Notes: generated from the sequence alone by a model not told the origin. A stretch of 62,984 nt of DNA, filler included, from Lenisia limosa (GCA_001655205.1; 11 parts of 11 records of this genome joined end to end with filler, not necessarily neighbours in it), one strand, 5' to 3'. Shown: positions 14,407-37,964, counted from the whole stretch's first letter. Numbers and translations: made by a program.

Positions 14407-17400
14407 TGTCGTCTGTTTCTGAAGGCGCCAAGATTGGTTCCGAAGCTGTCAAAGCCGACATCCTACAAGGTCAGTAGAGGCAAGGCTCAGAATCGTTATA
14501 GGAATGATGAAAACTAACCGTTTTGAAACACATATTACAAAATTGTCATTGAAGGTCAGGAGAAGGAAGGCTCAGAATCGTGATTGAAATGATGATAAAA
14601 GCCAATTGTGTTGTGTTAGATAAAATTATGATTGACATGTTGATAAGGCTTAATAGACAGGAAGATAAAATACCTAGAAATATCAAAAAAAAAAACCATG
14701 AAGCCAATGATAGAAATGACAACAAAATTCCCAAAATGATGATGGGTATTACAAAAAATACAACAGAATCGTGAAAGAAATGTAAATAAAAGTTTTATAA
14801 ATAAATGACGGAGGTTCTGAAAGGAAAAAGACGACAAAGCATTTGCAGAAAGAATATAAATGACACCGCACAACTATGGTAGGAACAAGGAAAACAATGA
14901 CAAAAATAACAGAACAAACTCTAATCTCAAAAATACAATAAAAAGAATTCAGAGGTTGAGAATCGAGCAAAATATTGATATTTATCGGGGATTTATCGAG
15001 AATAAAATGCAGTATCTTGCCCAAAAAAGGGACATAATTAGGACCTCGTGCAATAAATTGAAAATTACTGGTAAAATTTGAACATATTGTAACGAGAACT
15101 CAATTTCAGCCAATTTAATTTCAAATTTTGTCAAATATTTCTTTAAATATTTAATTGCACTGAGTCCTATGTGTTGTAACGAATATAACATGAGGCATGG
15201 AGGTTCAACCAGTATCAGAGTACCATGAAGACTCCTTAGTCAACTATATCAGGAGGATATGGGGTTCACTGTACGAAAAAAAAAAAACAGTTCATATGAT
15301 TACTTTGTTATATTGACATGGAAAAGATATGCTTTTTTCACAAATTTGCCCAAGTTATATTATAATTCAATATCTCGTATAAATGTGTTAGTGTGGACGG
15401 TTTTGGACTATTATATTTCTCATCTCTACGAAACTAATATTATGATTTCGGGGAAACAGAAGAAGAGGAAAAGGCGTTTAGTTAAAAGACATAAGCTTTC
15501 AATATTCTCAAAAAGGGAATCTTTAATAGAGTAGAACAGCTTAAAAGGGTTAAAAGAGCAGGAGAATCTCACACAGGAAGATGATTGGCAATAAAACAAA
15601 CAATCTGGGAAATCGAAAAGGGGGGAAGAGCCAATCACTCCGCGGTCCTACCTGAACATTCTTCAATTCACTGCTTGGCACAGTTTTGGCCGACGCAAGG
15701 GCGATAAACTCTTCCATTTCGGAAGCGAACGGAGATCAACGACACCACAGCCTTCCTTTGTTGGCTCGTTCTTTTGTTTTGTGTTTTTTTTGTTTATGGC
15801 TGTTTTATGGTATGTGTTGTATAGTTGTTCAGTCCTCAAATAGATATTACTCAATACAATACCCCATGTGGGGATATTCTCAAGTCCTCCTCCTTGTTCC
15901 TCTCTCTTTCCCATTCTTATCCCCTACTACGACCCTACTGCTATACTATATCTAGTTTTCGCTAGTTAGCTGGCGAAAAAGTCTATTTTTGTTGATACCC
16001 CCCTCCCCCTATACTCTTCTATTGGAAGTATTTTCCTTCATGCTGTCTTTCCAAACTGAAACCCAACAGAGCAGTATGTGTGGAAAGGAGAGCGGCAATT
16101 ATGTTAGTTTGAAGAAGCATTTTTTGAGGTGGTCAGCCATATTTACCACACAAATTGAAGAAAGTGCTTAAACAATTTTTGAATGTGAATTGTGCAGTCC
16201 TCAACTTTTCATTTCCCCCTCTCCCCGATATTGAAAAGACTTTGACACCCTAGTTTTACCCTGAGACCAACATATTTTCACATATTCCACAACTACACCC
16301 ATGTTATTACTAAGGCTTCTCAACGATCCCAACAAAGACTGATATTCCCGATAAATACTCAATATATTCTCGATAAATACTCGATAAATTGGCGATAAAT
16401 ACTCGATAAATTCTCGATAAGTTCTCGATAAATACTCGATAAATCCTCGATAAATGTCGACATGTACCAGTCTTTGAACGTAGGGAAGCCCCTGTTAATT
16501 TTTTTCATTCACAACCCAGATTGGCAATTCACCACTCCATTGTGCTACTCAGAGTGGATACCTTTGAAAGTGGCGCGTGGTTAGACGCTAAAAATCGACG
16601 TGTGGGTTATTAGCTGATTACTTGCTTCAGCTGTCGAACTTACCGAGTGAACGGCCAATTTATCCTCTCAGTGGAACATGAGGCCCCTTCACTGGGCTGC
16701 CCAAAACGGACATACGGACTGTTTTCAGCTTTTGATTGAGGTTGGGGCTGACCGGAACAAGAAAGTTATGGTGATACTTTGGGATTATTACCTGGCTATA
16801 CTTCGTTCATTAAAATACGGCTTCTTGAGCCCCTGAGGAGAAATAAACAGTCGCCTATTCACACCAGATAGAGTGGAGGGACACCTCTTCAAAGGGCCAA
16901 AAACCAAGGAAAGTCAGAAATATTGTCGAGTATCAGTCTGGGTTTGAATAATGTAATTTGCAAATCCAAGTTACAGTTGGACAAGTGATTTAAACAACGA
17001 CATGCACCACTACGGCTCGTCGACTTGGAATTCTTGTGAAAATCCTGGGAATTCCCCTCCTTGTCAAAGCGGGGTAACATTGTGGAGCCTCCGAGCTGGC
17101 AATTCTCATATCCAAATCCATGGCCACCTGGGACCTGGATGCTGTTATCGGTATGGGGGGAGGATTGAGGTATATTCATGGAAATTTGAAGAAAGTTATG
17201 GAATTCACTACAAGGCAATCGCAAGTCGATGCGCCGTAGTGAAATATATCCAGTTGAACAAAATTCATCCTCTCCAATAGTGACAGTATGGCTGGGGTAG
17301 CTATTCCCTATATATCCGAAATCACGACGGCGGTTGGTTTTGATGTATTTGTATCGAAGATGTACCGGTATATCTAGGATGAGAGGCGAGGGGGTCCAGC

Positions 17401-17630: not shown

Positions 17631-17983
17631 CTAAGACAGTGTTACATACAAAAAACAACACTACGCCGCATCGAAGGGTCTCATGTAGTGTTTGGAAATT
17701 CCATAAATTTCTCATCTATTCTCATTGTCTGTGCCTAGTACATATAGAGACTAGATATTTTTGTTTCAGATATTCAGCCAGTGTTAATTAATCGGTTACT
17801 TTTCCTGCTGGATCTTGGTTTAACACAATACATAATGTAGCTGAGGAACCAAGCCTTCAAGGGTCCTATAGTTTTGAAAATTGGCAATTTGGACAATTGT
17901 TTTGGAAATATGCTGTTTCAGTCGTTGCTTGGAATTATTTGAAAATATCATATATTATCTATACATCGCACAAAACAACACAA

Positions 17984-18920
17984 TTAAAACTTGATTAAAT
18001 ACTTCGGCAAAATCTAAAAACAGTCATCTCAATTGAAGTGACAGGTCTGGTTATAGAAACATTTCTTTATGTGAAAAGGGCTCAAGTTTACCTGCTTCTT
18101 TGACCGAATGACGATGTTCTGTGAGGCGGAATAATCGTGGTGATTACTGTCGTAGCCACTAGGCATTCCTGAACCATTGTAGATCTAAACAATCAGTGGT
18201 GATTTGAGGCTTCATAACGTCTGAAAATGAAGAACAATTTTTCGATAAACAACCGTATTAGTTTTGTCATCTTTGTAAACCAGCACAGTCGGTATTAATC
18301 TCTTCCATATTGTCACTCAAAATATCACTCAAATATATCCAACAAAAGAATCATGCGTTGCCATGTCTCACCTGCCCTTGAAGAACCTCGCAAATGAACA
18401 TTTTTCTTGGGCTTTCATTTTTGCAGTAGCTGACGGACGTCTTAGGAACTGTAGCAAAGTATGTTCCCGGTCCGTATGCATTGGTAACTTTTTTGCCTTT
18501 CTAAATATGTATTAAGCTGTTTAAATCATGTTTTATTATCCAAAACAGATCAATATTGAAAGCGTTGGGTTACCAAACTCTCCAAACAAAAATATAAATC
18601 ATCAATTAGACAAAATCCTTGAGAGTAGTTCTAAAAAAACTATTATATGATATGAACTTTTATGATGATTAAAATCAAAATATAATGGTATTGATCGATA
18701 TATTGCAAATTTACCAACGTACAGCTCGTAATTCGTCAGGGTCCAAGAAGCCATTCTTCATAATCTCTCCAACAGAATCTCCGGTGGTTCCATGAAAAAA
18801 CATTCTAAGTTGTCCATCAAACAAGGAGTGCATACCTTGCTTCTCCGACATTTCTTTTCTCAAACTCCTTCTTGGTTTGATTAAAGCGGTCAAGAACGAA
18901 TTTGCTTTCAAAGATGGTCA
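17984..18920 (-). CDS. PARP catalytic domain 2 (mono-ART-like; catalytic Glu position appears to be Asn), within the ZNFX1-like gene
   Basis: VTIFESKFVLDRFNQTKKEFEKRNVGEAR|MFFHGTTGDSVGEIMKNGF...NAYGPGTYFATVPKTSVSYC...KMFICEVLQGQ|IYNGSGMPSGYDSNHHDYSASQNIVIRSKKQ|ILPKYLIKF*. Confidence 0.85.
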
Positions 18921-21900
18921 CCTGTGTTAATATTATGATTGCCACTTGATCATACATGTACATGCAGTAGTTTAAGAGTGATCCTGAAAATAATATATCT
19001 GTATTTTGGCTCAGAAGTAGTTAAATCTAAACTCCAAACACGAAGTTTGGGCAATGGCTTGTCAAATTTTGAAACCGACGGCCATATTTATCAAAACTTG
19101 TCCCATGCTGCCATACTTAGAGCTATATTCCTCGGTCCGAAAAAAAGACCAGTAAAATTATCGAAGGATTGTATGGTATTCAGTCTTTTTTCGAACCAAC
19201 GTCAAGTCCTAGCTTTACTAAACCAACGTTGAAGAAAGTATCTTCTTGTCTAGTTTAGAGCTCCAACTACCGCCTACAGAAATCGGATTGTAACTTTGAT
19301 TTGATCCCAAGAGGAATTTAAAGACTCCAACTGCTCGTTGGAATTCCTCTGCTTTCCATCCTAGAAGGTGAAACTGATTTCAAGAGAAAATGGTTTAAAA
19401 GATTTTAGGACTAATGTGAATTTAGCTCGTATGGTAGAAATGAAATGAAAAAAATTCTAATTGACAATTGAAATAATTTGTTTATGGTATCCCAGTGTAT
19501 TTATTTGTTTTCCTAAATTTATGATAGATTATTTCTCTTGTTCAAAAAAATATAAAAAAATATGACAAATCCTTTATGTTATCACATGCAACTATATTAT
19601 GGTAAATGCCAGGAAAATAGTAAATTGATGCTTAATAAAATTCCATTCCAATAAACCTGTGGCGTTTTTGAATTTGTCTGCCAAAAGTTCTTCTTCAAAG
19701 TAACTGCTGCGAGAAATCTGAAAAGTGTAAGTGGAATTAAAGCAAGTTATAATTCAAGAAACTTGTCACGGATATCCTAACATAAACTATGATGACGTCA
19801 GCTATATACTACTTTTTACTTGAATTGAATTCAGGTTTGTCATTATGAAAATCATAATTTTTGTTCTCTTAAGTCAATAATAATTATTTATATTAGATTA
19901 AATCCAAATCACGCAGTTTATGCTCGTTTACGGTTCTCTTTGTTCTTCGACCGAGCCAGTTTTTGGAACTTTAAAGCAAATACATATACTACCTGTATTT
20001 AGTACTATTATACGGATCCTAATAAGTTTGTATGATATAGAGTATTGTGTTCGGTTATATCAAATTCAAAGAACTTACTGGTCTATTTTTGGATTTCCAA
20101 GATGGCGCATTGACCACCACAAATTTGACGAGGTACTTAGGGCGGACTAAGCGAGCATCATAACAAACGTATTCAGAGTTTTGGAGCTAAAATGTAAGAG
20201 ACTTTCCCTCTGAAGCTTCAGAATCACAAAAATATTCCATTTTCTATCTTTCGATGATTGGGTTAAAGCCTTCAATAAAGAAATAATTAAGAAATAATAA
20301 AGAAATAATATTGAAATATAATAAAGAAACGATAAAGAAATAATAAAGAAATAGCCGAGGTTACTTATCATTTGTTTCTAAAAACCGCCAACATTTGCAA
20401 CACCTTTGTTTGCAAGTAAGGAATGGCGCTTCATTTTAGTGAGGACGTCTTGAGCTGAGTAACCATTTAGGGCTTCCGTGGCAATATGGGTGCGGCCTGG
20501 GTTCAACTGGTGTGCGTGTGTTAAGAATTGTTCACATTTATCAACTGGCACATTGTAATTATTTTAAGGAAATTAATTGACAATTAAAGGGTCTGAAGGA
20601 AGGGGAGTTCTCGTTACAAATACTCCACTTCAAATTTTTGAATTTCTTATTTATTCGCAATACCACTTCAACAATCGACTTAATTATTATGTCTCCCAAC
20701 TAACGTCACAGACAAGAATGTGACCAGAGTTTCCTTGGGCAACGCTGTTGGTGTACATGTCCTGGGCGCTTTTCGAAGGGTCAGTAGCTAGGTACACTCC
20801 TTGACCAAACATGTTGCTAAACTGTTACAAATCTCCTTGGTTATACTTCTCAATACAAAATAACCTGGAATTATACGAAAATATAGTCAACTGCACCTTG
20901 GATATAATTTTAATTTGATGTCTAAAGAATATCTTTCCACTATGTATTGCTGACAATCATCATTTACGATTTTTCTGATCATAAACAGCCCTTCACACAC
21001 CCTTTCCCTTTGGTTTTGACCTTGTCTTTAGGGTCCACATCGAAGATCTTGAAGCCTTCTTGCGTAATCTTATTGACAACTGAAATGGTTTAAAATCATA
21101 TGTAGTCTATGTATAATTCACTGTATATACGTATAAATATCATATGTATGTATATCTGTATATCTTGGATAGTCACCCTTACCTTACAGTCCACAAGAAG
21201 AGTTGGCCGCGCCATGTACATTAATTACTTTTTTTATATCCCATATTATTACAGCAACTTTGCTAAAAAAAATGTCATTACGACGATATTAAACCAGTTA
21301 GTTGCGAATTGTTAATGGAAGATTAGAAGCGTTCCTTGGACTTCAACAAAAGACTGAACTTTATGACAAATCCTCTCATTATTTGAACCAACCTTCGTTT
21401 TTGGTTCCATGGTATACTTCGACAGAGGAACTGCTATTGCTGTTCAGACCTAAGGTATAAAGAAAGGCATGAGTTTTATTCAAAAACAAACAGAAACGGA
21501 TATTTTATTAACGTTGAAGATCACTGTACAGCTATTGTTGGCTTATTTTTCCACACACACGATAATTTTTTGCAATGATATAGTCACGACCGCTCAAAAG
21601 TAACAACCAGCGAAAGATAATAAAAAAGACATCTCAATTCTCAAACCGTACTCCCTGCAAGCTTGGAGGTACTTCTTCTGAATGTTCGAGTTCTCCAACT
21701 TGTAAACAGCTTTAACCCTATTATGTTAAATAAAAAGACTGTAATATATTGCATGGTAACACAAAAACACAAATAATATAGAATCGTCAAAATAATATTA
21801 TGTTGAGTCCTCTTGAAATACAAAGTGTAATAAATAGACATGAAGAATGTGTGCAATTCTATCCTGCCTACTCGATTTGCTGCGGGTTAGATTGGTATGT

Positions 21901-24900
21901 GTTGTTGATGTTCTCTTGGATGGTATGGAACACCAGTGGGTCGGCTTTCTAATGATGTCACTTTTTGACCTCACTTCAGTGCGAAGAAAGACTATTTTTC
22001 TTGATAATCCTTAGGATAAATATCGGTATTTCATATTTCACTTGTCTTTTCTAGAATAGAGGGCGGACCTAGGTGCCACTGGTCAAGACGTTTGTCATTG
22101 GACACATTTTTTTCAAATGAAAGAAAGAAATTAGATACGGACTTGGGCTTCACTAGGTAAGGAAAATAGTGGTAAAACATCTATATTTATCTACGATTGA
22201 TTGTTAAATAAATTCACTCTTATTTTGAACCCAAGTGAAGCCTTCGATCAGGTATACCACCAATTACAATGACACTGTTTTCATACGGATATTTATCTGA
22301 AATGAGTCAATTGAGAAATTATAGATACACACAATCCGTTACCAACCATGTATCTCAATACAACTAATCAACCTAATGAAAAGTCTGATTCAAAGAAGGC
22401 AAATGAACAACATCCATTCAACTGTATTTTAACCACCCAAACCGTTTTATTGAAGTAGTCAACTTTCTTCGACAGCTGATGAATTCTAAAAGTTTCAGAG
22501 ACATATGTATTTATGCAGCATGGTTCAGATTGACCACCTTTATGAGAAAATAATGTCAGAGGGACGGGATTAGAGTTTCACTTCCATTGCATAAATAGAG
22601 ACTCAAGTCTAGCAAAATGCTCATAATTGATATTAACCAGCTAATTATTATCCACATGCTGATATCAATGAGTCAGTTTGAAGGAAATCCGCCTGAAATT
22701 GAACGAGTCAAAAAATTACACTTAATAAAACTTTCTTATTGCTCCATATTATAATTAAAGCGTTTTGACAACTTACTGCTTGTCCAGTTCTTGTTTTCGA
22801 AGGCGGATTCTTTCAGCATTTTGACGGCAACAAACTAAAGGATTAACAAGTTTCGTTCAATATAATCAATCAAATGGTAAAATAAAGGCTTAGTTAGTAA
22901 AAGTCCTGGAAAATATTAGAGTTTTCGAGGATTGATAAAAAAATTCAGTCTTTTTTCGAACGGAAATGAAGTACAAGACCCTGATATTCACCTGTGCAAT
23001 CCTTAATAGTGCTACAGCTGTCTCCACATAGGTTGGTGCAAGGATGACCACAGTCCAGTTTGTTTTCACATGGATGGTCACAGAATCCAGTTCCAAGAGA
23101 GCAAATAGTGTATATCTGAGTATTATATGAGTTTGTAATGAAAAGGAGAGAAATAGTATTGAGCACATTTGAAATCATATAACTGCCACATTAATACTTA
23201 CCTTGTGTTTTCCATTTTTGCACATTGTTTGAGATTCAGCAGCGCATCTGTCAAATGTCATAGTCAAAACTATTGGATTTTAAAATGTAGATAATACTCA
23301 CGTTTTATGAAAAAAATGTGTAAAAACAGTGTTCTGTATCAGAGATAAAAAGAAATACGTTGAGAATTGCGGGCTATTCCAAGAATGTGATCATAGAGAG
23401 CTTACGGAGGACATATGCCACTGTGGCATTGCCAATCACATTTGTGGTCGCAATTTTGGTGGCGTCTTAAGAAGTCAACATATTAAACCGAATTGGAAGT
23501 AAACGACAAAATATCGATTGTTTTCAAGGATTTATCGAAGAATTCAGTCTCTTTTCAGACAAATGTAATGAAAAAAAATTCCTTTATCACAAACCCAGTT
23601 CCCACAGATTGCATTTTTCGAGGCAAAGTGGATCAGATTCGTGACACTTCGCTTGAATACGATGTGTTCTGTCCCGCTTGCACGTTTTAACAACAGTCAC
23701 CATACATCTTCTTTGGTGAAATATAATCTTTTGCATTTATCAAGATTCAACATTATTAATCTAATCACCAAATGTTCATTGATAACGAAGTCAAGTGTAA
23801 AAAACCTGCATATGAACTAGAGCTTTATGTTTGGTTCCAAAATACATTGTATATAATACATGTATGTATCGAGATATTATCAATAATTTATTATTTTTGT
23901 AACAGAAAGTGAAGCTCTAAGTTGAAAACTGTTTATTTTCATATTGTCCTACCTGACATCACAAGGTCCGCTGTGGCACTTTGATGGGCAGCTATGCCGA
24001 CATTTGAGTTGTCCATCGCATAATTGTGTACAAGTCACATTTAGAGGAAGGGAATTGGTTTTGCACACTGTGGTATGGTGAGTTTAAGCATACAGTTTCT
24101 ATATGAATACTTTGTTGATCTATAACACTTCAAATAACAATTGTGACTTGTGTAGGAGAGCAGGTGAAAAAAAAATCCGGTCACCTTAAGTCAAATTCTT
24201 CTCTAATTTAGGTATTATTTGTCCAACAAACATGAATCCGGATGCTTTGGACATCTAAGGACAAGGTACTTTTCTAGTGGTGACGGATCGTCTCTTGCCA
24301 GGGTTCTGAATACATGCTTCCAAGTTCTAAATTGATGAGGAAAGAATCTATGAAAGGGGTTTTCAGAATATTTAAAAATCCCTCAATAAGAGGCAGTTGA
24401 GATTTAGGTGAAACATGACATTACCATACTTTGAATTGCGGAGATGCTGAATATTGCCCATAATGATGAGTCCTCGACGAGCACGAGTGAGGGATACACA
24501 ACTACATGGTAATGGTGGGGTGTATTTTCGAATTAAATCTACACAAATTATTTAACATTATCGATGAATCCTATTTACTATCGATATTTAACTGCCCTTT
24601 TACAGCCCAAAGAGAATCCTTACTCAACTATATTACAAATAGTACTTCACTTCGGTTCGTGAAGAACATATAGAAAGTTTTCGAGAAATTCCAGTCTATT
24701 ATCGAACCGAAGTAAACACTAGTTATACAGCTTACTTGAGGCTGTCAGTAGCAACATGCCCTAGGCAGTTTTCATCGTTGTTTCGAACTGTACTCAGAAT
24801 TACAATCTAAAAGCAGGTAATTATTTTAAGGTGTTCAAAGAAATAATGATCAAATGATCCAGATGTTACCTACGTATACATAAATGTACATAACAAACAC

Positions 24901-27900
24901 ACTTACAAAAACGAAGTGAATCATGACAAAACATTACCAAACAATTGTCAAAAATTCAAAAACCAACATCATTTTCATCACCCTGGTAGCGGTTGACAGT
25001 AGACACGACAATCTACATCATTATTTTGGCGATAATTTTTTTTTATTAAAACAGCTCCAAATCTAGAAGTGAAGGATTTTGGATGCTAATCAACAAATTT
25101 TGAAGGTTTGTTTGTTAGACCTTCTAACAAGGATTTAAGTTCAGTTATAAACTTGTAGGATTATGATATGATATATTATGAACATACAATACATGTATTA
25201 CGTATATGATATACTCTACATATATTGCAGAACCGTCTCACATCAGAAGCACCTGCAATGCCTTTTCTTGAGAGTTCATTAGAGACACAATCGGCCTACA
25301 AGGAAACGTGAAATGTTGCTATTTTATTAAAATTTGGTCAAGTTGTTACGTACTTTAAGCGTAAAATAGTTTTTATTTTTGTATAACTTTGATAAAGTTG
25401 TTACATTCATTGACGTGAAAAAGGGTAATCGATAAAATAGTTATGATGAGTGCATTTTTGTTTAATATAATATCAAAATAAACGTATTTTTTGTTAATTA
25501 TAAATAGTTAGAGGAATTGCTGATACGCTTCATGTTTTTATACATAAACACGTCTCCATCGAATAAGGAATGAATAAAGGTATTTCAGTACATATATTTT
25601 TAATATGCTAAGAGAGTACCCCTATCATGAATTTAAATTGATGATAGTTACAATTGAGACCGTAATATGTATTACATTACACAACTTTTTACAAAATTAA
25701 CTAATGAGTTAAATCCAATCTTGGAATAACTAAATATATTTGATCTTAGCGTGAGTTAAAATATCATAGAAATTGTGCTGATCTTGTTTTTACAATCATG
25801 TTGACATCATGTATGTCAATTTCTTGGTTACAAAATATGTTAACAAAATTTTCAAAGTGTCAATATGAGCATATGGCTTAATTCTGACCTGAGCTTTGTA
25901 AGTACATAGAATTGTAATCTTCTTGAAGTCAATTTGCTCTTTTCGATGAAGGAAAATGGCAATTTCAGACGACATTTGCGCTTCAAACCTTGAAACATCA
26001 AACGCTTACAGTTGAGCATTTTAGATAAATAAAATGGCGATGAAAAATATTCAAAGCTGTTTCACCAATCGTGACTAACATGTTGTACTTTGAAGTTTCC
26101 TTGTTTGTCTCCTTATGGGAATGGTCAAAGAAAGCGATTCCGTTGTACCCAATTGACTTCATTGGTTTGATATGGCGAAGCTGAAAAAGTAAAATTGGCA
26201 AATATTGAAGCAGAATTCAAGTGAAAACTAAAATGGGAAATTTCACATCTCCAACTTTCCCATAAAATCTGTATTCTTGATCGAGTCCCCTCCTCAGTTT
26301 TGTTAGCTTGCCAAAGTGGCATACTGCCATCACTTTATCAATCATAATGCTAGAAAGAGTATTATCAGTATAAGGGATCATACTCTTTCCATGTTATCCT
26401 CCAATTCTGGGTAGATGTACTTAGCGAGTCGCGAAATCGCAGGAATCATCCGAGCTTGTCTCTAGAGGTGTTGAAACAAATGTGGAGGAGAAACATCATC
26501 CCTTAATACTCCCAGAGATGCGCCGATGGTAACATTTCTCCTTTTTGAGAAAAATAAAACAAATTCTTTAAGGTGTGATGCATCTATCAATGAATTAAAT
26601 ATATTACAGTATTTGTAACATTTATCGAATGTAATATTTGCTATTTTGTTTCCAATTAAATTACCTTAAGTGAGGTGAATCCGGGATAGTTGTTGGTGAC
26701 AAGGCGCTCAAGAAGCGATACATCCAGATGGTAGTCTGTTTCAGAAAATTAGTAGCAGATATAGCACCACCATGTAATACTTATATCGCAGAAAAAGACA
26801 TTTTGACTTTCCAAAAAAAAAATAGATTATCCGAAATGTATTACTCTAATTTGACAATACTTTAGGTTTTCAAGTGAATTTTTGAACAAGTACAACACCA
26901 GGTCTAAGTTAAACCTTTACGTTGTTGACAGTCCAAAATATACCTCCCTCCAACAATACCATTTCCCCCAAGTAACCCTATATATATCACCTTGAACAAG
27001 GGCAACCAGGACACTACCCCTTTCCCCCACCTTTTTCGAGAGCGTGGACATTCACACTTCCACGGAGCTAAGTAGTAAGTATAATATAAAACCACCTAAT
27101 GTTAGTCAAAAAATAACAGTGTTTTTAAAATTTTGTTTGCATACCTGTTTATGATCTCCAATCATAACTAATCGCTCAATTCTAGAAAGTGGTCAAATAT
27201 AATAGTTTGGAATGAACAGAAGTTTCAAGAAAATTCTAAATAACGTTGTAATAAAGTGTAATATTCAACAATCTTTAATGGTAGATTTCATATGCGCATA
27301 ATGTACAAGAGTGATGGAGCATATCTCACGTGGGAGACAGCATAGCGGCAAGTAGTGGTTCCAGAATCTCTCCAGCCTCTTCGACAACTAGAGCTCGCGG
27401 CTTCATGGTGCGTAGCAGTCCCTGATTCTTATTAGAATAGTTGTTTTTATTTATTAATTGCGAGTAGCATAACAAATAATATCATCTCTCCTTGGTTTCA
27501 TTAGGGCCACATACACATATCAATATATGATTAGTATATCACATACTGTATTTGTATATATCCTGCTCTAAATCCTAAATACCAAGCAAATTTGCAGCGA
27601 CAAAAAGGTTTTTCAAGGCACGTGTATTTAAACAAAGATAAATAATAGAAATCACTAAATTTTACAAATTACTTCCCCGACAATTCAAGTCACATGTTTT
27701 GGTATATTCTTCCATCTTCACATTTAGATAATTATTTTAACTAAAGACAACAAAGAACAGTCTTATGGTATATAATATATCCCCTTAGATGCAATAAAGT
27801 AATGGAAATAAAACTTATCCTTAGTCTCGCTGTTGTAATAGCTCACTAACAGCTGATGAAAAAGCTCTCACAATTTAAATGGAATGATCAGGAAATCGTA

Positions 27901-30900
27901 CTTTCAGGTTGTCAAAGAGGAGCAAAGCATGTTCTACGCAGGACTTTACTATATTCCAGAAATTGATTGAATTTTCCACACAACATCGACACTTGTCAAT
28001 CATATATGTACCGGAGTGAAACCGTTACCTTACCGAATGTATCGAACCTCCAGTCACAGTAAAGGCAACAATATCAGCATTTTTCAAAATCTATAACCGT
28101 GTCAAAATATTAATAATGATCTACAATATCGAAAAGTTCGACGTTATGATAATAACATGTACTAAGAGAGAAATCACAAAATATCTGGCTGAAGCTGTAC
28201 AAAGTCAATTCCTTGGTATCCATACGTGGGCTTGCATTGACATCTTGGCTTCCTTCAAACAAGAACCCTCCTTCTTTGCTTCGAGGAGAATCTAAAATGG
28301 CATTAAAAGAACAGTTAGGGAAATAAAAAATCAATTACAAAAGCCTACGTTTTGCAAATTCTGATGGGCTCTTTCGATAGCTTTGTGTGACCAGTACCGC
28401 AGAACCTGAAGGTGAACAACATTCATAATTATGTTGTCTCTAATTAAGCTTCTCTGCGTCCCAACACTACATAATATGTATAAAAGAATTGTCTTGAAAC
28501 ATCCACCTGTTGTCTTTTGAGCTTGTCATCTCCGATTTTACTGATATCAGGCTGCTCGGCAAGGAACACAATGTCCTCAGTGAGATCAGGGATTTTGGCT
28601 TAATATGTGAACTTCATATAAGATTAATATTTAAGTAGTTGTAAGTTGCAAAAAAATTGAAGCAATCATTCGAAATGAAATCCCACATGAGACCACAATA
28701 AATATTAAAAACTATTCCTGTTTCATCAATAATACGAACCGTGAATGGCTCGAAGTTTGATATCCTTGTCAGTAAGGCTTTCAAACGTATTAGCAACATC
28801 ACGTTGGCGCTCAGAGGCCTCTTTCCTGAAAAAATATTAGCTTTGAAAGATTGCATCATTATAATTTTATGTTCCAAGCATGGTTTGCATCCTACATTCT
28901 CTCAAGTTCGTATTCAGTAGATTTAACGGCAACTCTCTTTGAAGTGCGTTTCTTTTCGGTTCTATAGCTAAAAAGTGAACTAAAAGAGTCGATTCTGAAA
29001 TACAGGAAAACAGCATCATATATTTCAAAGTTCAATATTCAGTTAAAATAACTATAAATATATTTCATATACCCAATAATATGTTAGGCTTCACTTCGGC
29101 CGTATAGGGACTATATTTCTTGATAAACATTGATAAATATTGATATTTACCGTTCTATTTCGGACTGAAGTGAAGGACCAATACCAACCCACACGCTCGC
29201 AGAGACGCCAGCCCAATGGCGCACCGCATTTTCCAAGGTCTGTCTAATTACAAACACGAACCTAAAGAAGAAATAACTCGACAATTTCCCGATTCCAAGG
29301 TTGAAAAACATCACAATCACAAAATACATCTTGGAGGAAAGTGATCGCTCACTTTGCAATTTCACAGGCCATGGTAAAACATTCCATTTCTGTTTGGTGG
29401 CTTCGGCGCTTCTAAATTGTAATACAAATATTTGATCAAACAGTTGGACGGACACTAATTTTTAGATATAATAATACACTCAAACCTGAAGGAAGAACTC
29501 TTTGAGATCGGCAATACAGTTCAAGGAACCAGGGTTACGGGCCTATATTGTAATTGTTTCAAAACCTCTGCATGGGTTGCAAAAAATGCTATTGGATAGC
29601 GTTTTCTGGTTGTCAATTCATCAAAATTTCAGATGCCACTGAGCTAGCAAAACCTACATCAAGTTTGTTGATTTGTTCCTGGGTTACCGTGCAAAGAGAT
29701 GGATACTGTAGAATAAGTATAAGGTGATTAACGGAATTCAATTGTCAATCTCACCAGCAAAAGAATAATACGCAAGATATGATGTTAAGCAAAATTTTAG
29801 AAGATATATTGTGTTAAACATTTGTCTTACCATAATAATCTGCTTCATGAAACGTTCGATATTGATAATGCTGCTGTATTCTTGTACCTAAGATAGAAGG
29901 TGAGACAATAGTCCATTAAATTTATGATATCATATATAATATATGTAATATGTTGATCTTAGTAACTCTTGACAATAATCAGATGTCTGTTTTGGTACCT
30001 TTTTGGAATTCTTGCACTCTTTAGTTTTTGAGTAGTACCCCATGAGCCCTTGGATCTGGAATGTTGTCATTGTTTTGAAAAAAAAGGTTATGTTCAAATA
30101 ATATACAAATAGATTGTGAATAACATACAGATATCATGAAAGCAATAAAAAGATAATTTATCATAGATATGTGCAACAATGTTTTGTATAATGATAATGT
30201 AATTAAAATTTGCATTGTTCAAGACAAAGGAATCTGAGCGATGGTGCATTTTTATTTAACTTATGAGAAACCCCTAACTTGTTCATTGGAGCATCCGAGA
30301 AAAACTGTAACAGCTGTGGCGGTATCAGGTTCGCCATTTCCAGCCATTGTCAGCATTTCTGCACAGTCAAGCAAGATTTTTGGGTTCTAATATTGTTTTA
30401 TCCAGTTATGGCGTAGTTCACCAATCTTACCAATAAAGCCTCTGCAGTTATCGGTGATTTCTTTGAGATTTTTCTTCGCAGTAAAATAAGCCTCACAGGC
30501 TGGATCTCTATACTTGTCATGAAACAAACATATTTCAAATTTCTAGACAGAATTGAAACAATCTTTGATGGAGTCCAATAATATCATATTATGATAAATG
30601 TATCTCTCAATAATCTTATATTATTGAAATAGCAATTGCCTGATATATCAGGTCCTACCTTTTTTCAATCAGTTTACTCTCATGAGCTTTTAGGGTAAAC
30701 TTCTCAGAAGCCTCATCTTCAGCTCTTAAAGGTGAACTTATTTTCTTTGAAATTTTCAATAGAGCATATCTGCGATGTATTTATACATCATATCGATCAT
30801 CTTATAATCTATTGGCAAATTCTTAAAAATAAGCAAAAATTATCTGTTTACAAAGGTACAAACAAATCAAATGACGACATACTTTCCACCAATTCGAACA

Positions 30901-33900
30901 ATCTTCTGAGTGAACCACTGAATATCCTTCAAAAATTCATCAAGCGCATGGTTCTTGTAAGTTGTTACCACTATAGGTCCAACTGAAATCGTTAAATCAA
31001 TATTCTACTAAGTTGCTATTTCCTTTGACATATTGGTAGATATTCCCTACGGTTCGAAAAAGACTAGTAAAATATGAACATTTATCAAGGATTTATCATG
31101 CAATTATGTATTTTTGGGACCTTAGGGAAGTTTAAAATGTTGAAATATGAAACGCAAACCCCATGTTTAGTCGAAAATTAATATCACAGTATGCTCTGAC
31201 TCCCATCTCTTAACAAAAGTATCAGAATATAAATATCGATGATTTATAGAAATGCAGTTATTTTTAAATCGGGTTGAAGTCTTACTCACATCCATTAGCG
31301 AGAAGGTCGAGAGCAATGCGGACGCCAAGATAAGACTTTCCCGTCCCGGGTGGCCCTTGAATACAAGACAGTGCTACACCATTAATCGTTTCAATAGATC
31401 AAAAACCGGGCACTATTACAAATGAAAATTCCAAACAATAATATTCGATTCCTAAACAAATTAACAATATCTGTGATGTAGAGATTTGGACATGTATTTA
31501 GAAGTGAAATTACAAGAAGGCTGTTGCAACGATGGATCTAATATGATGCCGTTTGAAAATGTCCTACAATATTCTCGCTGTAACACAAAAGCTTCTTGTT
31601 GACTTGGGTCGAGGCTTTCAATCGCCTTAAGTTGTGTTAAAGGTACGGGGATATATGATATACGGATCGAAGTGAAACCTTATGGTAAGGGGTTATCTGG
31701 TGTAATAAGTAGCCAACTTTTTCAACAGTTTCATGTGTAATAGCAGAATGTCGTGGCTCAAAGCAAGGAGATGCATATGATGGCACAGTAGGATCCAACT
31801 GCAAGTAATGAAACCTCAATTTACACGTCATATTAAAGCAATATCAGATCAAACGGACAGTTATTATAATGGATTAGTGAACATACAATTGTGTTTTGGA
31901 ACGGGAGCTCTTTTGTATGTTTGATAATCTTCATAGCCTAAAGAAATAAAGCGTTTCCATACAATGGGATTTTGTGAGGGAATAATTATAAATATGGGGT
32001 TTTCAGTGACTATGAGCATATTGTACGTTCTGCTAACTACTCAAGTGAAATGTTTCAAAAAAGATGAACTCTTCTCAATACTCTCGCCAACAGGATTGGT
32101 GGCTGAATAGAAGACAGGGCTTTCCAGAGCCACAGCGAAACCGCTCCATGTGTACAGATTTTCAATGCACTTGATAAGCCAATTGTCGTCACTAATTGAT
32201 AATTATTAAATAACAAATGCATTACTTTATTCTTCTCAAAATTGCCGCCAGACATCATGTTCACAAAAACACCAATATGCCTACTCGAAAACAAAGTCTT
32301 CAGGTGGTCTTTCGAAACTACAGGTTGCAACACTGACATAGGTTTTGTCTTCTTTGTATTGTTCAACTCTTCGAACTTCAAGATACACAACTTCCTTGAA
32401 TGATGAAATGGAATTCAGTAATATCCCTCTAAATGCTATAAGGTCCATCTAAAATATTCTAGTTTATAATATTATGTGTGAGGATACAATTACAAAGATA
32501 ACACACAAATGGCAAACTTGTGTCCCTAGAGATGTAGTATCTCATGAATAAATTGAAACAGAAATCAACAAATAGCGTTATCAAAAAGATTGTGTCTTAT
32601 GATTTGGTCAATTATTGAGATAATTAGATGTATTTTATCACCTATCACCTTGAATAACTCAGTAGCAGCAATACACAGCAGTGAGCCTGTCATGAAGTTG
32701 CAGCCTTTATGTGCTTCAGTTGACCTCAGCTATAACATAATTTTAAAGTAGTTCATATAGATATAGTATAGCTAATTTGTTTCAGAAGTAAGACTTTCTT
32801 TTGAATCTGAAATATTTGCCTCTTGTGCTTTTGATTATTACTATATCTATTTTGAATGATAAATTTAAATCACTTCAACAAAGGCTTAATAATTGCTAAT
32901 AATCCTATACTATATGTACGTATACATGTATAATAGATACGCATTACAGTAGGGCTAGGATAATTATTATTCACAGATAACTGCTTGAATTTTCAAACTA
33001 CAATAATTTGATAACCTATTCCTCTTACCTCAACTTTGACAAGAATATCACCTTGACCCCCAAAGTCAATAGCTGATAGTAAAAAGCAAGAAAAATATGC
33101 GTATTATTTACTAATGAAAACAATTTCAGGAAGTGAAATCTACTCCCACTAACCAACAACTTCAACGTTTTTGTATAAAGTTGGAAGCATGGTATTTTCA
33201 GCAAGTGGACGGCGTAGGCGGATGGAGGAACACACATTGCCTTTAGGAGGTAATATTCAGGGAATATTATTACATAAGGTTTTTTACACAAATCATAGAT
33301 ACCAGAATTAACGCCTTTTCAAATAACTTATTCTTGTATTTATGACAAGCATATAAATATCTCATTCAACAACAGGAATACAATAGTAACACAATATACT
33401 AATGGAGTTAAGTGAAGGCAGAATGAAATACATTTTAACGCCTACTAAGGTTATAGAATGTTTCGCAACGAAGGAGTGTGTAAAACGTCTCCAAATAATG
33501 GGACAAACTATTCCAAGAACCTAAGAGAGGTAATGAAAAACGGGAATGCTCAAGCAAAAGGTCATATAATTTACTGATTGTTTCTTACTAATACAGTTCC
33601 GATCGAAATATTGATAATTCAGTAAGCATTCAATCACCTTAAATAAGTAATGTATCTTGTCAAAGCCGTCATACGGTCCCACTTACAATACGCAAAATAT
33701 ATTCTGCATACATTTCATTTGATATATTAATATACTATAGTTTACAAATATACAGCGACTGTGATAAATCTTGACCGATTTTCAATTTGATTTCCCAAGG
33801 AAAATTGATCAAGACTTATCCTGGTCACTGTATACATCTGCATGCGTTACTGTTGTATCTTTTGCCAAATTACAGTGAGTCATACCGTTTGTGATATTCG

Positions 33901-36640
33901 GCTGCAAGCCTTTGAGAAAAAAGTTTCTCGAATCGATTTCATTGAAAGCCAAACTTGGATCGGGAAGGATTGCTGAAGGCATAACACAAAATAAAATAAA
34001 AAATGGCCAAAAACTGTGTTTTTCAAAATAACAAGTCGATAGTTCATGTTTGATGGGAAAATACAAACGCATTATAATCCAATATCCAAACGTGAAGAGA
34101 TACCACCCATACCCACGGGCGACTGTCCAATAAAGCTCTCTGTTACTTCCGGGAACACGCAGGTAGATCAGAGACAATATACTATATATGAAAGCCTAAG
34201 TATTTAAAAATTTAAGTGTTTCAAAGTAAATACTTTAACATAATACAGAAAGGTGTCCCAGGTTCCAATTTGGATCATACTCCATAACTACCCCATTTCA
34301 TATGATATGTTGTTTTCTGTAGAATTTCACTTTTATTTCCAAAAGACAGCTATAATATCAATATTTATCGACAATTTTTAAAAATAGAGAACCGAAAGGG
34401 ACGCTCTGGTATTGTTAACCAACCTGTTCCGTTGTGGCAAATTTATCTGCTTCTGCCAAATTAGCTGTAAAAGGTCCGAGTGCAGGAGATGTCAGTATAT
34501 TCTTGTTAGCTGGAGGAAGTCGACTAATACGTAAGGGACATAAATTTTTTGTGACTGATACCTTATTTCTTGAAGTGTCTATTACTTATATCAGCAGACA
34601 CACCCCCAATGATAGCAAGGCACACAACATCTTTAATGCACTGAGTTCGAAGTGAAAATTCAACATATAATATTATATACTGTATGATTTGGTAAATATA
34701 TTGCAAACATAATATACGTTATTCAATTGCTTGAAACCAAGAGTTTTATTGCGTTCATGTGTCCCATTGCTCTTCACTCTTGTATAGACCGGTGAAATAT
34801 CGATATTTAACGATATTTATCGACAATTTATCGAGAAATCCAATCATTTTATAAAACCAGAGTGAAGCTGTAATACCACATTACTAATCAACACCCACTT
34901 TATTTGCAGTGTAACAGCTTCCATGATGAGTTGAGACATAGATGGCAGAATGTGAGGTGAAGCTGTGACCAAAGTCGTCAGCAGCTTTGGGAAACTCTGG
35001 AATTTCATCTGAATGTTTTAGTTGTTAAAATGACTACACCAAGACAACGAAGCAGTTTTGATTAGCTCAGCTTACAATTGAATTGCCGATAAGAGAGTTC
35101 CAATCCACAGCAATTTGCTGCACTAACTTCTTCAAGGCAGTATACTTCATAAGGCTTGTAAGTCCGGATAAAATTGTGTTAAGAGCCCTGAAATGTGTAT
35201 TAAACTGAATGAATACAAGGAGAGGTTCTTGATAATAGAGTTAGTCATACTCGATAAAAGGAAGTAGCGCCTTTACTGCTTTTGTCTTGATTTCATTTGT
35301 CCTAATAAGTCATTCAAATTTAACGAGACAAGAGCTAAATGTGAGAATTAATAACGAGTAACCCGTTAGCTTCAAAAATTGCTGTGATAAGAATAGAATA
35401 TGTGTAGCTCACATCTAATTTATTTAGATGCCGCGTGATTTCTTATTATTTTACATGGAATACCGTGGCTTGTATTGTTATTAGAGGAACATACATGATT
35501 TGGGTAAATGAGAGATTGAACCAGTTGGCAATTAGAATGGTGTTGTTGACGATGAAATCTGCGCCATAGAGCTGGTCTGAACAGTCAAGGAATACGAAAT
35601 CAAAGTTTAAATCAAGCTCAAGTGTCTCCGTGCATAATTTTTATTACAAAAAATATATTAAAGTGCCAATTACACTTAGATAGAATGTCATAATACAGCA
35701 AACCCACCAACCAGAAATCTCGGCAGTAGGCTGAAGCAGTTTGAGCCAGTGATCTGAACAAACTGCAGCAAGTCTTTCACGGCATTGCTTATTGAATCCA
35801 GTGATCTCAGCATGCCGGATTTTTGAGTTTTGAGTCTTAAAGTTTAATGAGCAAATATTATAATGAAAAAAAATGTAATGCGTACCCAGCATCTCCATTT
35901 TCAAGAGATCTAGAAATTAAGCTTATCCCAACGTTGAGTTTATTTTTGGTTAGATAGTGGAAGTATGGATAAAAAAGTGTTGTGTAAGTTTTTGGGACCG
36001 AAAGTGAAGCTCTTCAAAGGAGATTGGTCTTATAGTGCGAACAGTATATCAAAGCTCACAGATTCCGAATTGGGATCATCCTGCCCTCTTTTCAAATAAC
36101 CTTCAATCTAAAATAGATAAAACAAGGCTAAATATCAATGTCATTCCAACAAGACAAATTTGAAACTCATCTTCTTCCACTCACTTTCCATCCTGTTTCA
36201 GGGACGAGAGGAAGCTTCTTGAGTAGCCTTTCACTCCAACCAGCAAACTAAATAATCACAGCCAAAGGTTTGTTCTAATATTCCTTTAGTGTTTTTGATA
36301 ACCTCTTATTAAATGAATTATTTCAAAAGAAAACTAAAGTAGAACCATAAGCTAATGATATTCGAAGCTCGAACCTATGAAGATGCGTATAATGTTCAGT
36401 AAATAGCATTATCTGTAAGTAGATCTTTACTTTTGATTCAAAAAGACAGAGTTTTCGATAAATCATCGATAAATATCGATATCTTGTCAGTCTTTGAAAC
36501 CAAAAGTGAAGCTCTAAGCTGAAAGGAGCCTCCTACACCATCAGGATAGAGTCGTGGTTTGCCAATGTCTTCTCCAGGAATCCAGACAATGCATGTATTT
36601 GAGTCCATGACCTTGTCGATTTGACCCACAACGCGACCCT
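17984..36640 (-). CDS. ZNFX1-like UPF1-type SF1 RNA helicase with NF-X1-type zinc fingers, apparently fused to two tandem PARP catalytic domains; start may lie up to ~37755
   Basis: Ordered ZNFX1-type motifs: LQPNITNG|SWNSLSHYLETFYTLLRCE; LSCIQGPPGTGKSYLGVRIA (Walker A 31356-31336); PIVVTTYKNHALDEFLKDI; NADIVAFTVTGG; ALVVEEAGEILEP; RLVMIGDHKQ|LRG; LDVSLLERL; RQARM; ITILCTYKAQ; STVNRYQGDEND|IVILSTVRNN; CVSLTRARRGLIIMGN; LRCPKHP. Cys/His fingers follow (CDGQLKCRHSCPSKCHSGPC; CDHKCDWQCHSGICPP; CENKLDCGHPCTNLCGDSC), then two PARP domains and ILPKYLIKF*. Helicase-to-PARP continuity is inferred from phase-compatible exons at 22850-21870. Confidence 0.8.
20085..21950 (-). CDS. PARP catalytic domain 1 (H-Y-E triad intact), within the ZNFX1-like gene
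   Basis: IEVKAVYKLENSNIQKKY...VEVYHGTKNEG|VVNKITQEGFK...SNMFGQGVYLATDPSKSAQ...GHILVCD|LNPGRT...NKGVAN|LQNSEYVCYDARLVRPKYLVKF. Confidence 0.88.
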
Positions 36641-37964
36641 AGAAAGAGGTAATAAACATATTTAGTTTAATGTTTTCCCCAAAAAGCATTAAAATCGTTG
36701 GGAAACTGGGTAAAATATTGATTATGAAGTGTTGGTTGATAGCTTCGGCCATATACTTCCTAGTATTTAAAAACACCGTCAATCCCGTAATCATCATGGC
36801 CCACCATCTTTATCTTCTTTCAGTATTTATATTGGAAATCAGACTTTAATTGCGCTTATTGTTGAGTAGTAAGCATTAAACTGGAAGGAGATGTGGGAGA
36901 GTGGAGGACACGGGAGTTAGAGTTGGATACACAGAACACAAAGAACAAGCTGAGTTGATGCTGTAGTATTGGAATGTAGTTGTTGTGTCATACAATAGAA
37001 GATAGGAGGCTTAAAGAGAAAGCGGCAAATCAAAAGTGGATCTGTATCGATAAAAGTCGAAATAATTCGATATAAATATCATATTTAAACGGTCTTTTTG
37101 AGCCCGATTCAAGCATGAATTAAGAAGAACATTCAAGAAAAACACAAAATAATAGAAAGACCTAAGCATTGTGGCGTGATTAAACCAATAAGTGCTTTCT
37201 TCAGGTGAGAATGACAACAGCGTAAATTTGTTGCCACATGGTTGTTAGTTATATCCCTAACCCTTCCACAAGGAAGTTTTGTGTAGTGATAGATATACTT
37301 GTGATAGCATGCGCAAAATGTGAAACAACATTCATACTCGTCAGTATGGGTTTCGGTTTATCGAAAAGCACTGGTCGGAAGGTGGCCTGGTAGAGTCTTT
37401 ATGGCCTTACTGGGTGTTATAGCCGGCCGTACAATCTTGCATATACTTATATCCGAGGCTTTAATCATAACATGCATTCATTTCCAGTCTTTTCAGGATC
37501 TTTCCAACAGATCTCGATCTTTGTTTGTACCGGGAACTTAGCGGGAAACATTATACATATTTTCTTCATCAATCCTCTTCTTTCTCTGTTGTTTTTTTTT
37601 TTTTTTTTTNNNNNNNNNNNNNNNNNNNNNNNNNNNNNNNNNNNNNNNNNNNNNNNNNNNNNNNNNNNNNNNNNNNNNNNNNNNNNNNNNNNNNNNNNNN
37701 NCTTATAGTCCTGATGTAATGGACCGCTTCGGATAGATACAACCTTATATTTCATTGCTACGTCTTATCTCACCGCTAATTGCTTTACCTCCTTCCCACC
37801 AACCACACACCCCACTTTATTCCCAACCGTATTCAACAAAACCTTGTAAAACTTTTTTTTTCTAGTTCATGAAATTATGTGTGAGTATATAACGCACAAA
37901 TGGCAAACTTGTGCTCACTAAAAGATGAGCTTGTTTTGTTATTTACTATCTCAGGTTTACGCCA

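Follow-up and report, generated by a model that had tools for sequence, protein, structure and literature searches.

A ZNFX1-like helicase gene with two tandem C-terminal PARP domains in Lenisia limosa

Among the closest known relatives of the gene analyzed here, which lies on the minus strand of a genomic sequence of Lenisia limosa, are the canonical ZNFX1 proteins (human ZNFX1, PDB 9q9z; C. elegans ZNFX-1; S. pombe Hrr1). Like the gene, they possess a UPF1-like superfamily 1 (SF1) helicase core with a motif Ia of the form YxNHALDxFL...IVRxGG, an EE catalytic pair, and NF-X1-type zinc fingers located directly after the helicase. They end, however, in a Z-RING and an RZ finger, whereas the L. 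limosa gene ends in two PARP domains (PARP-A and PARP-B). Human ZNFX1 binds RNA via its SF1 core, is auto-inhibited until RNA is bound, and ubiquitinates RNA by means of the E3 activity of the Z-RING and the RZ finger (bioRxiv 10.1101/2025.09.05.674436; PMC13710534), and worm relatives of ZNFX1 act in heritable RNA silencing (review PMC11959080). The analyzed piece (positions 14407-45696; approx. 35% G+C, no long open reading frames [ORFs]) is part of the window, i.e. the whole stretch of DNA of 62,984 nucleotides, filler included, to which all coordinates refer.

The zinc-finger region also differs in length between the two layouts: it spans approx. 500 residues in canonical ZNFX1, approx. 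140-165 in the clade of PARP-bearing proteins described below and approx. 165 in the gene. An RZ finger (PF20173) is present at residues 1686-1733 of the canonical protein P0133 and is listed for none of the 92 PARP-bearing relatives; between 22992 and the stop codon, the RNA-defined frame of the gene contains no Cys-rich module, i.e. no RZ finger. A Z-RING of approx. 100 residues is unlikely, judging from the predicted non-Cys linker of approx. 45 residues between the last finger and PARP-A. In the clade, as in the gene, the PARP pair takes the C-terminal place that is held in canonical ZNFX1 by the RZ ubiquitin-ligase finger. An earlier note on this DNA, made from the sequence alone, was therefore right in stating that canonical proteins do not end in PARP domains.

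Several other systems resemble the gene in part. Tankyrase (PARP5a/b) shares the H-Y-E triad with PARP-A, but the RNA-defined frame leaves no room for the tankyrase ankyrin repeats and SAM domain, nor for the CCCH fingers and WWE domain of PARP12 and ZAP (PARP13). MkoA of the Mokosh system also combines a UPF1-like helicase with an effector, and the helicase core of the gene's family matches MkoA models at 2.5e-45 and 2.3e-53. The effector of Mokosh, an anti-phage system, is a PLD-type nuclease, and the system is not known to contain zinc fingers or PARP; the resemblance to MkoA is general to the UPF1-like superfamily and is no sign of direct descent. DTX3L-PARP9 and PARP14 are vertebrate antiviral modules that link ADP-ribosylation and ubiquitin. 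They are similar to the gene by analogy only, as nucleic-acid-linked innate immune factors in which a PARP is paired with another writer or reader module; they are not known to be related to it in sequence beyond the PARP fold, and no macrodomains, DTX domain or helicase are shared.

We consider it probable (approx. 0.8) that the locus contains a single expressed gene for a ZNFX1-like helicase of the UPF1-type SF1, with NF-X1 fingers, a basic linker and two tandem PARP domains, and that this gene belongs to a widespread eukaryotic clade of ZNFX1 paralogues, in which it is basal and strongly diverged. That it is a real fused gene of the ZNFX1-PARP family can be stated with still greater confidence.

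Transcripts and the reading frame of the gene

Stop-to-stop translation of the minus strand from approx. 33.5 kb to 18 kb revealed short open pieces containing GPPGTGKS, VVTTYKNHALDEFL, VVEEAGE and LTRARRGLIIMGN, as well as Cys/His-rich runs (CxxC/HxC) and two sets of HGT and G-x-G-x-Y-x-A. The resulting gene model (33521-17984) comprises 39 exons in one frame, with 1037 codons and a single terminal stop, and has the order helicase, NF-X1-type zinc-finger region, basic linker, PARP-A, PARP-B, stop. Translation, Pfam and family profiles thus located on the minus strand, and in the order given by the earlier note, all of the domains that it had named (ordered helicase motifs, NF-X1-type fingers and two PARP domains). 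The terminal stop that it had placed after the second PARP is a TAA at 17984-17986, exactly where it had set the start of the region.

The sequence is contained in two runs of the same study, X1 (poly(A) RNA) and X2 (DNA-like), both of which were aligned over 17950-23900. Three spliced RNA contigs (identity of at least 99%) cover this 3' part of the gene on the minus strand, and every intron that they reveal is of the GT-AG type. Contig 3 (715 nt) is composed of the exon ending at 23955, 23606-23709, a 106-nt part within 23115-23606, 22992-23115, 22777-22834, 22443-22485, 21872-21948, 21647-21717 and the start of the exon ending at 21449. Contig 2 (685 nt) contains 21001-21027, 20705-20816, 20393-20506, 20079-20186, 19657-19717, 19278-19360, 18836-18921 and 18723-18804, plus an overhang of 12 nt matching 18489-18500, while contig 1 contains 18372-18494, 18092-18184 and the exon ending at 18013, and continues past the TAA into the 3' untranslated region. 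Four joints of contig 3, among the zinc-finger exons, were recovered from the record coordinates, bin depths and frame; the 106-nt part corresponds to exons 23406-23465 and 23202-23247, the sole combination with AG/GT borders, matching depths and an open frame.

Contig 3 contains eight consecutive GT-AG junctions leading from the zinc fingers, through three linker exons, to the first PARP-A exons, and the frame is free of stops from 23709 to the TAA (538 residues). The interval 22850-21870, for which phase-compatible bridging exons had been proposed, is crossed by the three linker exons, spliced and in frame, and no transcript end was seen there in the RNA contigs. Upstream, the frame set by RNA (exon 23955-24067) stays in phase with the helicase exons defined by homology. 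The latter were predicted independently, and the assignment of helicase and PARP to a single gene rests mainly on this agreement; together with the contigs, which join zinc fingers to PARP-A and PARP-A to PARP-B, the agreement upholds the single gene suggested before. RNA run X1 also contains 6% of the words of 24000-33900, and the upstream exons are therefore expressed.

An arrangement of two adjacent genes, one for the helicase with its zinc fingers and the other for the tandem PARPs, would imply that the fusion arose from read-through or from chimeric contig assembly. The depth of the RNA contigs indeed differs, rising in the 3' direction from 8.2 (zinc fingers and start of PARP-A) to 22.3 (PARP-A to PARP-B) and 56.3 (end of PARP-B), and the evidence consists of assembled contigs, not reads, so that a contig spanning two genes would be no proof of a single transcript. 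However, the eight junctions of contig 3 connect the zinc fingers with PARP-A in one open frame, and the breaks between the contigs lie inside the PARP domains and not between domains. Furthermore, a 3'-ward rise in depth is expected for a poly(A)-primed library, and the same fusion occurs in 92 protein clusters (see below), including P0040, which is encoded by a single ORF on an mRNA-like contig. We therefore consider two separate genes extremely improbable.

The helicase exons were defined with a family profile, built from 39 full-length members and aligned to the DNA by a GeneWise-like splice-aware dynamic programme. The best chain on the minus strand scored 325 bits, compared with 24 bits on the opposite strand, and eight RNA-defined exons were reproduced to the base, which validates the method. 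When only YAG acceptors were permitted, several exons were missed (including 31568-31678 and 25889-25988), and these were recovered by an any-AG rule; with relaxed acceptor sites the alignment yielded 19 exons, from 33521 to 23976, carrying all of the helicase motifs. The partial spliced protein scored 615 bits (E 1.7e-188) and is collinear with family profile positions 377-1923. Given this score and the difference between the strands, the fit is beyond chance.

The SF1 motifs follow one another in one frame as GPPGTGKS, TTYKNHALDEF, VVEEAGE, IGDHKQL, RQARM, STVNRYQGDEND and LTRARRGL, and the gene thus has the ordered motifs (I, Ia, II, III, IV, V and VI), catalytic Lys, acidic pair and Arg fingers of a UPF1-like SF1 member. 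Motif Ia is encoded by exon 30876-30982 (VVTTYKNHALDEFLKDI...IVRIGG), motif V (STVNRYQGDEND) by exon 24968-25012, and motif VI (LTRARRGLIIMGN; LTRARRGL) by exon 24430-24501. In single-piece scans, the Walker A piece matched Pfam AAA_11 and PhoH, and the motif VI piece matched AAA_12 (E 0.029); the motif Ia piece matched residues 734-770 of the ZNFX1 chain 9q9z_A. The Glu pair of VVEEAGE corresponds to the catalytic Glu1006-Glu1007 of human ZNFX1 (PMC13710534), and the ATPase motifs GPPGTGKS, VVEEAGE and LTRARRGL are intact. A look-up in the ESM Atlas returned generic helicase clusters only. The zinc-finger region, encoded in 24326-22992, is 164 residues long, of which 29 are Cys and 11 are His. 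One of its pieces matched Pfam zf-NF-X1 with E 0.0014 and 19 bits, which is below the curated cut-off of 22.7 bits, and the zinc-finger exons matched the family profile at 4.6e-06.

Two peculiarities of splicing were observed within the transcribed part. The RNA-supported acceptor at 23466-23467 (exon 23406-23465) is AAG instead of the usual YAG. In contig 2, a GT-AG intron of only 31 nt (18805-18835, minus strand) is spliced out, while the neighbouring introns are 78-494 nt long; its retention would shift the frame just before the His motif of PARP-B. A chimera of the DNA assembly was also considered and rejected, as the unitig joins (approx. 19842-19866 and 23510-23537) fall in introns bridged by the RNA contigs. 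An exact scan of metagenome contigs with an RNA-supported exon junction detected no cDNA contig.

The two PARP domains and the ZNFX1-PARP family

Pfam PF00644 matches four single pieces, at collinear profile positions, which belong to two separate domains (E 2.1e-06 and 0.0046 for PARP-A; 5.3e-06 and 0.075 for PARP-B). The best single exons score 27.8 bits (PARP-A) and 26.5 bits (PARP-B) against a PF00644 cut-off of 26.7, with homologues at 82-122 bits. After splicing, PARP-A (approx. residues 670-850 of the partial model) and PARP-B (residues 899-1037) match the family PARP model at 5.4e-31 and 2.1e-23, respectively.

A phmmer search with the motif Ia exon identified 36 library proteins. One of them, P0022 (1773 aa), contains the Pfam domains ZNFX1, AAA_11, AAA_12 and PARP, and also matches one zinc-finger exon and one PARP-A exon of the gene (tblastn). 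A further search, seeded with the C-terminal part of P0022, yielded 92 protein clusters with PF00644, nearly all of which also carry helicase domains. With an iterated PARP model, two tandem C-terminal PARPs were recognized in 79 of the 92 clusters, and in 71 of these both domains exceed 100 bits. The members span corals, a jellyfish, an acoel and conifers, and include Limulus polyphemus LOC106460493, Tachypleus tridentatus, Tigriopus californicus TCAL_04452, Dendronephthya gigantea, Rhopilema esculentum and Paramuricea, as well as Symsagittifera roscoffensis XP_063720468 (by cluster look-up), Cryptomeria japonica and Taxus chinensis. They are deposited in RefSeq/UniRef under automatic names ("NFX1-type zinc finger-containing protein 1-like" or "Poly [ADP-ribose] polymerase"). 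One member, P0040, is encoded by an uninterrupted ORF of 6036 nt; the 7.6-kb Logan contig that carries this ORF resembles a full-length fused mRNA of another organism.

The architecture is therefore not new, and the novelty implied by the earlier note is not supported, since wide annotation of the layout, which the note itself had named as a refutation, is indeed found: this is the standard layout of a widespread, catalogued and functionally undescribed family. The literature covered by a full-text search and by two surveys of PARP families and their evolution contains no description of a ZNFX1-PARP fusion; the likeliest source, Blasi et al. 2022 (Fish Shellfish Immunol 121:456), lies outside this coverage.

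The gene shares with the family the order of domains, the H-Y-E triad of PARP-A, the H-Y-x triad of PARP-B, the stop directly after PARP-B and the 615-bit collinearity mentioned above. It differs from the other members by its low identity (38% with the best relative), its very long basal branch and the N in the triad of PARP-B. In PARP-A the triad is H-Y-E (VYHGT, GVYLA, NSEYVCY), as in 71 of 71 family members. In PARP-B it is H-Y-N (FFHGT, GTYFA, SQNIVI); the His and Tyr are kept in 71 of 71 members, while the third residue is M in 41, E in 23, and I, V, A or Q in the rest, N being found only in this gene within the family set. The NAD+-site residues are intact in both domains. With an A-type and a B-type model, PARP-A of the gene scored 100.5 and 45.3 bits, and PARP-B 45.9 and 81.0 bits, respectively. 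Since each domain best matches the model of its own type, the tandem pair, in which each domain is an orthologue of its family counterpart, was inherited and not independently formed.

Comparison with solved structures placed PARP-A of the family member P0040 closest to tankyrase (5e-12) and its PARP-B closest to PARP12 (1.3e-08) and ZAP. The short PARP exon pieces of the gene itself matched no PDB chain at E 0.1 or better, and the subfamily assignment, made via P0040, accordingly applies at the level of the family. The likeness to PARP12/13/14-type domains that had been suggested thus fits the second domain (PARP12/ZAP), but not the first, which is tankyrase-like.

These data also bear on the possibility that PARP-B, or even both PARPs, are non-catalytic modules for NAD+/ADP-ribose sensing or scaffolding, comparable to ZAP/PARP13 and PARP9, which would make the protein a reader and not a writer. 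The third triad residue of PARP-B is variable in the family and is N in the gene, and the inactive domain of ZAP is among the nearest solved relatives of PARP-B. On the other hand, the H-Y-E of PARP-A, found in all 71 members and in the gene, speaks for selective maintenance of catalysis in one domain or both, and even PARP-B has kept its His and Tyr throughout. Non-catalytic PARPs are, in our opinion, a rather doubtful interpretation.

The position of the gene was determined in two trees based on helicase and zinc-finger columns, one of 109 proteins (FastTree) and the other of 42 proteins, with the PARP regions removed (IQ-TREE). In both, canonical ZNFX1 is split from all of the PARP-bearing proteins, the gene and a helicase of Euglena gracilis (support 99). 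In the 42-protein tree this branch, with an SH-aLRT of 99, separates the gene, the Euglena protein and 30 PARP-bearing proteins from canonical ZNFX1, and the gene lies on its far side from the vertebrate, insect and other PARP-less ZNFX1 proteins. It is placed outside the animal and conifer members, in an order relative to the Euglena helicase that is not settled, both being long branches.

The proteins P0034, P0094 and P0102 represent two gymnosperms of the PARP-bearing clade, Cryptomeria and Taxus, and an E. gracilis transcript, which groups with them and lacks PARP over its 1499 residues. This very patchy distribution could reflect ancient origin followed by many losses, gene transfer, or a truncated transcript. 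In many members of the family (P0064, P0040 and approx. 20 others), a cold-shock domain (PF00313) at the N-terminus provides a second module for RNA binding.

Several points weigh against a single, functional and basal member of this family. With regard to the transcripts, the evidence is composed of assembled contigs of one small poly(A) library and not of single molecules. The gradient of depth could result from the 3' bias of such a library, or from additional, shorter PARP-only transcripts. The joint 21393|21079 was inferred: contig 3 reaches 21408, and 21393 is the sole in-frame GT donor from this position downwards; the acceptor 21079 was chosen from five in-frame candidates as the best fit to the PARP consensus. 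The joint 18723|18500 is supported by the 12-nt overhang and GT-AG ends only, while the joint of the helicase to the zinc fingers (24232 to 24067), which none of the RNA contigs aligned over 17950-23900 crosses, rests on frame, an intron of 164 nt and collinearity with the family. In the case of the tree, the basal position and the pairing with Euglena may be an artefact of the long branch (1.7 substitutions per site). An H-Y-E triad is no guarantee of polymerase activity. Finally, the model covers about half of the expected approx. 1900 residues, and an inactivating lesion may be present in the parts that lie outside it, i.e. the 5' third and the helicase insert.

The last point raises the question of whether the locus is a decaying, non-functional copy, i.e. 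a transcribed pseudogene. Half of the expected coding length shows no homology match, the branch is very long, the identity to any relative does not exceed 38%, and a dispersed repeat is present in several introns. A pseudogene is nevertheless very unlikely, in view of 1037 stop-free codons over 39 exons, intact helicase motifs, and NAD+-site His and Tyr residues preserved in both PARPs. The RNA is correctly spliced, even at the 31-nt intron, and polyadenylated, and the regions without a model coincide with the least conserved parts of the family. We therefore retain the interpretation of a single expressed fusion gene, and the L. limosa genome thereby gains a sound, transcript-supported annotation of a large gene with many exons.

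Possible mechanism and role

The mechanism proposed below draws on the identity of the domains, the conservation of their catalytic residues and the analogy to ZNFX1. The helicase would bind single-stranded or structured RNA and hydrolyse ATP, as does human ZNFX1. RNA engagement would then switch on, or position, the C-terminal writer module, which is expected to transfer ADP-ribose from NAD+ instead of ubiquitin. In such a module, the tankyrase-like PARP-A (H-Y-E) would be the main transferase and may extend chains, while the PARP12/ZAP-like PARP-B (H-Y-N) would act as a mono-transferase or as an NAD+-binding regulatory partner. Possible targets are (i) the bound RNA, (ii) the protein itself, or (iii) nearby proteins of ribonucleoprotein particles, and the biological role might be defence against viral or selfish RNA. 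By analogy, we estimate that the chance of RNA-triggered ADP-ribosylation by the gene product approaches, but does not reach, one in two, and an immune role of the gene would merit much the same guarded estimate.

A real fusion could instead act in silencing by endogenous small RNAs, in the silencing of transposons or in RNA quality control, as in the case of C. elegans ZNFX-1 and S. pombe Hrr1, and not in antiviral defence. The activity of worm ZNFX1 relatives in heritable silencing (PMC11959080) is in favour of such a role. Nothing in the window, be it inducibility or neighbouring immune genes, is specific to immunity, and a second ZNFX1-like helicase located head to head with the gene (43691-44144) suggests a local helicase family with divided roles. 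Patchy distribution and long branches, in contrast, are typical of conflict genes. The nearest subfamilies of PARP-B, PARP12 and ZAP, are antiviral in vertebrates. Neither of these two arguments is decisive. A role in silencing or quality control, although the less likely outcome, is a serious alternative to the defence function considered above.

Taken as a whole, the clade might constitute an ancient, undescribed branch of RNA-sensing defence proteins, in which the RZ module was swapped for a pair of ADP-ribosyl writers by a fusion that predates the animal-plant split, and RNA bound by the helicase would set off ADP-ribosylation of that RNA or of its ribonucleoprotein particle; we put this forward only tentatively, as a rather unlikely scenario. 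A sister clade with a conserved H-Y-E PARP, and a second PARP, at the RZ position of ZNFX1 suggests a natural swap of writer modules on the same RNA-sensing chassis. If true, this swap would link the ubiquitin and ADP-ribose systems, which already meet in vertebrate antiviral defence, and a basal gene verified at the transcript level would push the origin of the fusion to before the animal-plant split. The value of these observations lies in the whole family, to which the L. limosa locus adds one very divergent member and verified splice junctions.

Coordinates and surroundings of the gene

The features of the gene are listed in Table 1. For exon 33440-33521, the spliced alignment gave 31.8 bits, compared with 13-14 bits on the opposite strand; alone, this exon has no Pfam match, and it lies upstream of the helicase core, where homologues have the Pfam ZNFX1 domain (PF25396) and where canonical ZNFX1 also has an ARM domain. 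Further upstream, the profile-guided spliced alignment revealed no homology exon above control, and the piece 36441-36638 had no Pfam match. The start codon and some 375 N-terminal residues of low conservation are presumably encoded in 33522-36640. Codon usage, scanned after training with the RNA-supported exons, gave no discrimination between the strands, and no ab initio model of the 5' part was therefore obtained. Within 28091-30875 the spliced alignment found no significant profile match and proposed only low-penalty, unreliable exons. The linker exons encode a basic, coiled-coil-like sequence (RQNAERIRLRKQELDKQIHQLSKK...) without a Cys-rich module of the RZ type.

Table 1. Features of the ZNFX1-PARP gene of L. 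limosa (coordinates of the window)
Feature	Position	Strand	Evidence or remark
5' part of gene	33522..36640	minus	presumed extent; no profile match above control upstream of 33521
Exon encoding GSWNSLSHYLETFYTLLRCETFYNLSR	33440..33521	minus	family profile positions 376-402, hmmsearch E 0.012
Rec1A exons 31568-31678 (LDPSQQEAF), 31290-31373 (Walker A, GPPGTGKS), 30876-30982 (motif Ia)	30876..31678	minus	profile 6e-08, 1.1e-12
Variable helicase insert stretch	28091..30875	minus	expected family profile positions 683-984
Exons 28034-28090, 27330-27421 (motif II), 27145-27181 (motif III), 27031-27067	27031..28090	minus	profile 1.3e-06, 0.016 and spliced alignment
Start of Rec2A: exons 26665-26735 (LLERLV), 26384-26461 (RQARMIPAIS), 26080-26180, 25889-25988 (ITILCTYKAQ)	25889..26735	minus	profile 8.1e-05, 7.1e-05, 6.4e-04
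Exons 24968-25012 (motif V), 24736-24806, 24430-24501 (motif VI), 24232-24326	24232..25012	minus	profile and spliced alignment
NF-X1-type zinc-finger exons 23955-24067, 23606-23709, 23406-23465, 23202-23247, 22992-23115	22992..24067	minus	RNA contig 3
Linker exons 22777-22834, 22443-22485, 21872-21948	21872..22834	minus	RNA contig 3, GT-AG introns, open frame
PARP-A exons 21647-21717, 21393-21449 (VYHGT), 21001-21079, 20705-20816 (FGQGVYLA), 20393-20506, 20079-20186 (NSEYVCYD)	20079..21717	minus	RNA contigs 3, 2
Inter-PARP linker exons 19657-19717, 19278-19360	19278..19717	minus	RNA contig 2, in frame
PARP-B exons 18836-18921, 18723-18804 (FFHGT), 18372-18500 (YGPGTYFA), 18092-18184, 17987-18013 (SQNIVI...KYLIKF)	17987..18921	minus	RNA contigs 2, 1
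Stop codon TAA	17984..17986	minus	directly after PARP-B

The second ZNFX1-like SF1 helicase is encoded on the plus strand (43691-43757, 43930-44012 and 44105-44144). Its sequence, QKQAFKLALTSPISLIQGSPGSGKTW...AVITYKNMSLDHLLEGI (Walker A and motif Ia; 46-55 bits), represents the first helicase exons, the only ones that can be recognized, and the piece ends before the gene does. The two genes may be a divergently transcribed pair of paralogues. A run of N (assembly gap) at 37610-37701 separates the presumed 5' end of the main gene from the plus-strand helicase, and the intergenic/promoter region is incomplete for this reason. Rfam gave no match in the piece, and in the rest of it Pfam scans of exon-sized pieces detected no additional domain.

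A short dispersed repeat (ATTCAGTCTTTTTTCGAAC...) was identified in four introns of the gene (19178-19212, 22212-22246, 22943-22977 and 23542-23576). Additional graph joints of the DNA run (23533 to 22941 and 23538 to 19182) coincide with the repeat sites, and within 22925-23123 and 23323-23720 the depth of DNA words reaches 7-15 times that of the baseline. The repeat, the joints and the depth suggest that the element is multi-copy, or that paralogous copies exist at other sites of the genome. Two tandem repeats were also found: an AT-rich 11-nt unit in approx. 7 copies (20274-20353), within an intron between PARP-A exons, and a 22-nt unit in 5.1 copies (16344-16455), located downstream of the gene in a locally G+C-richer patch (44%).

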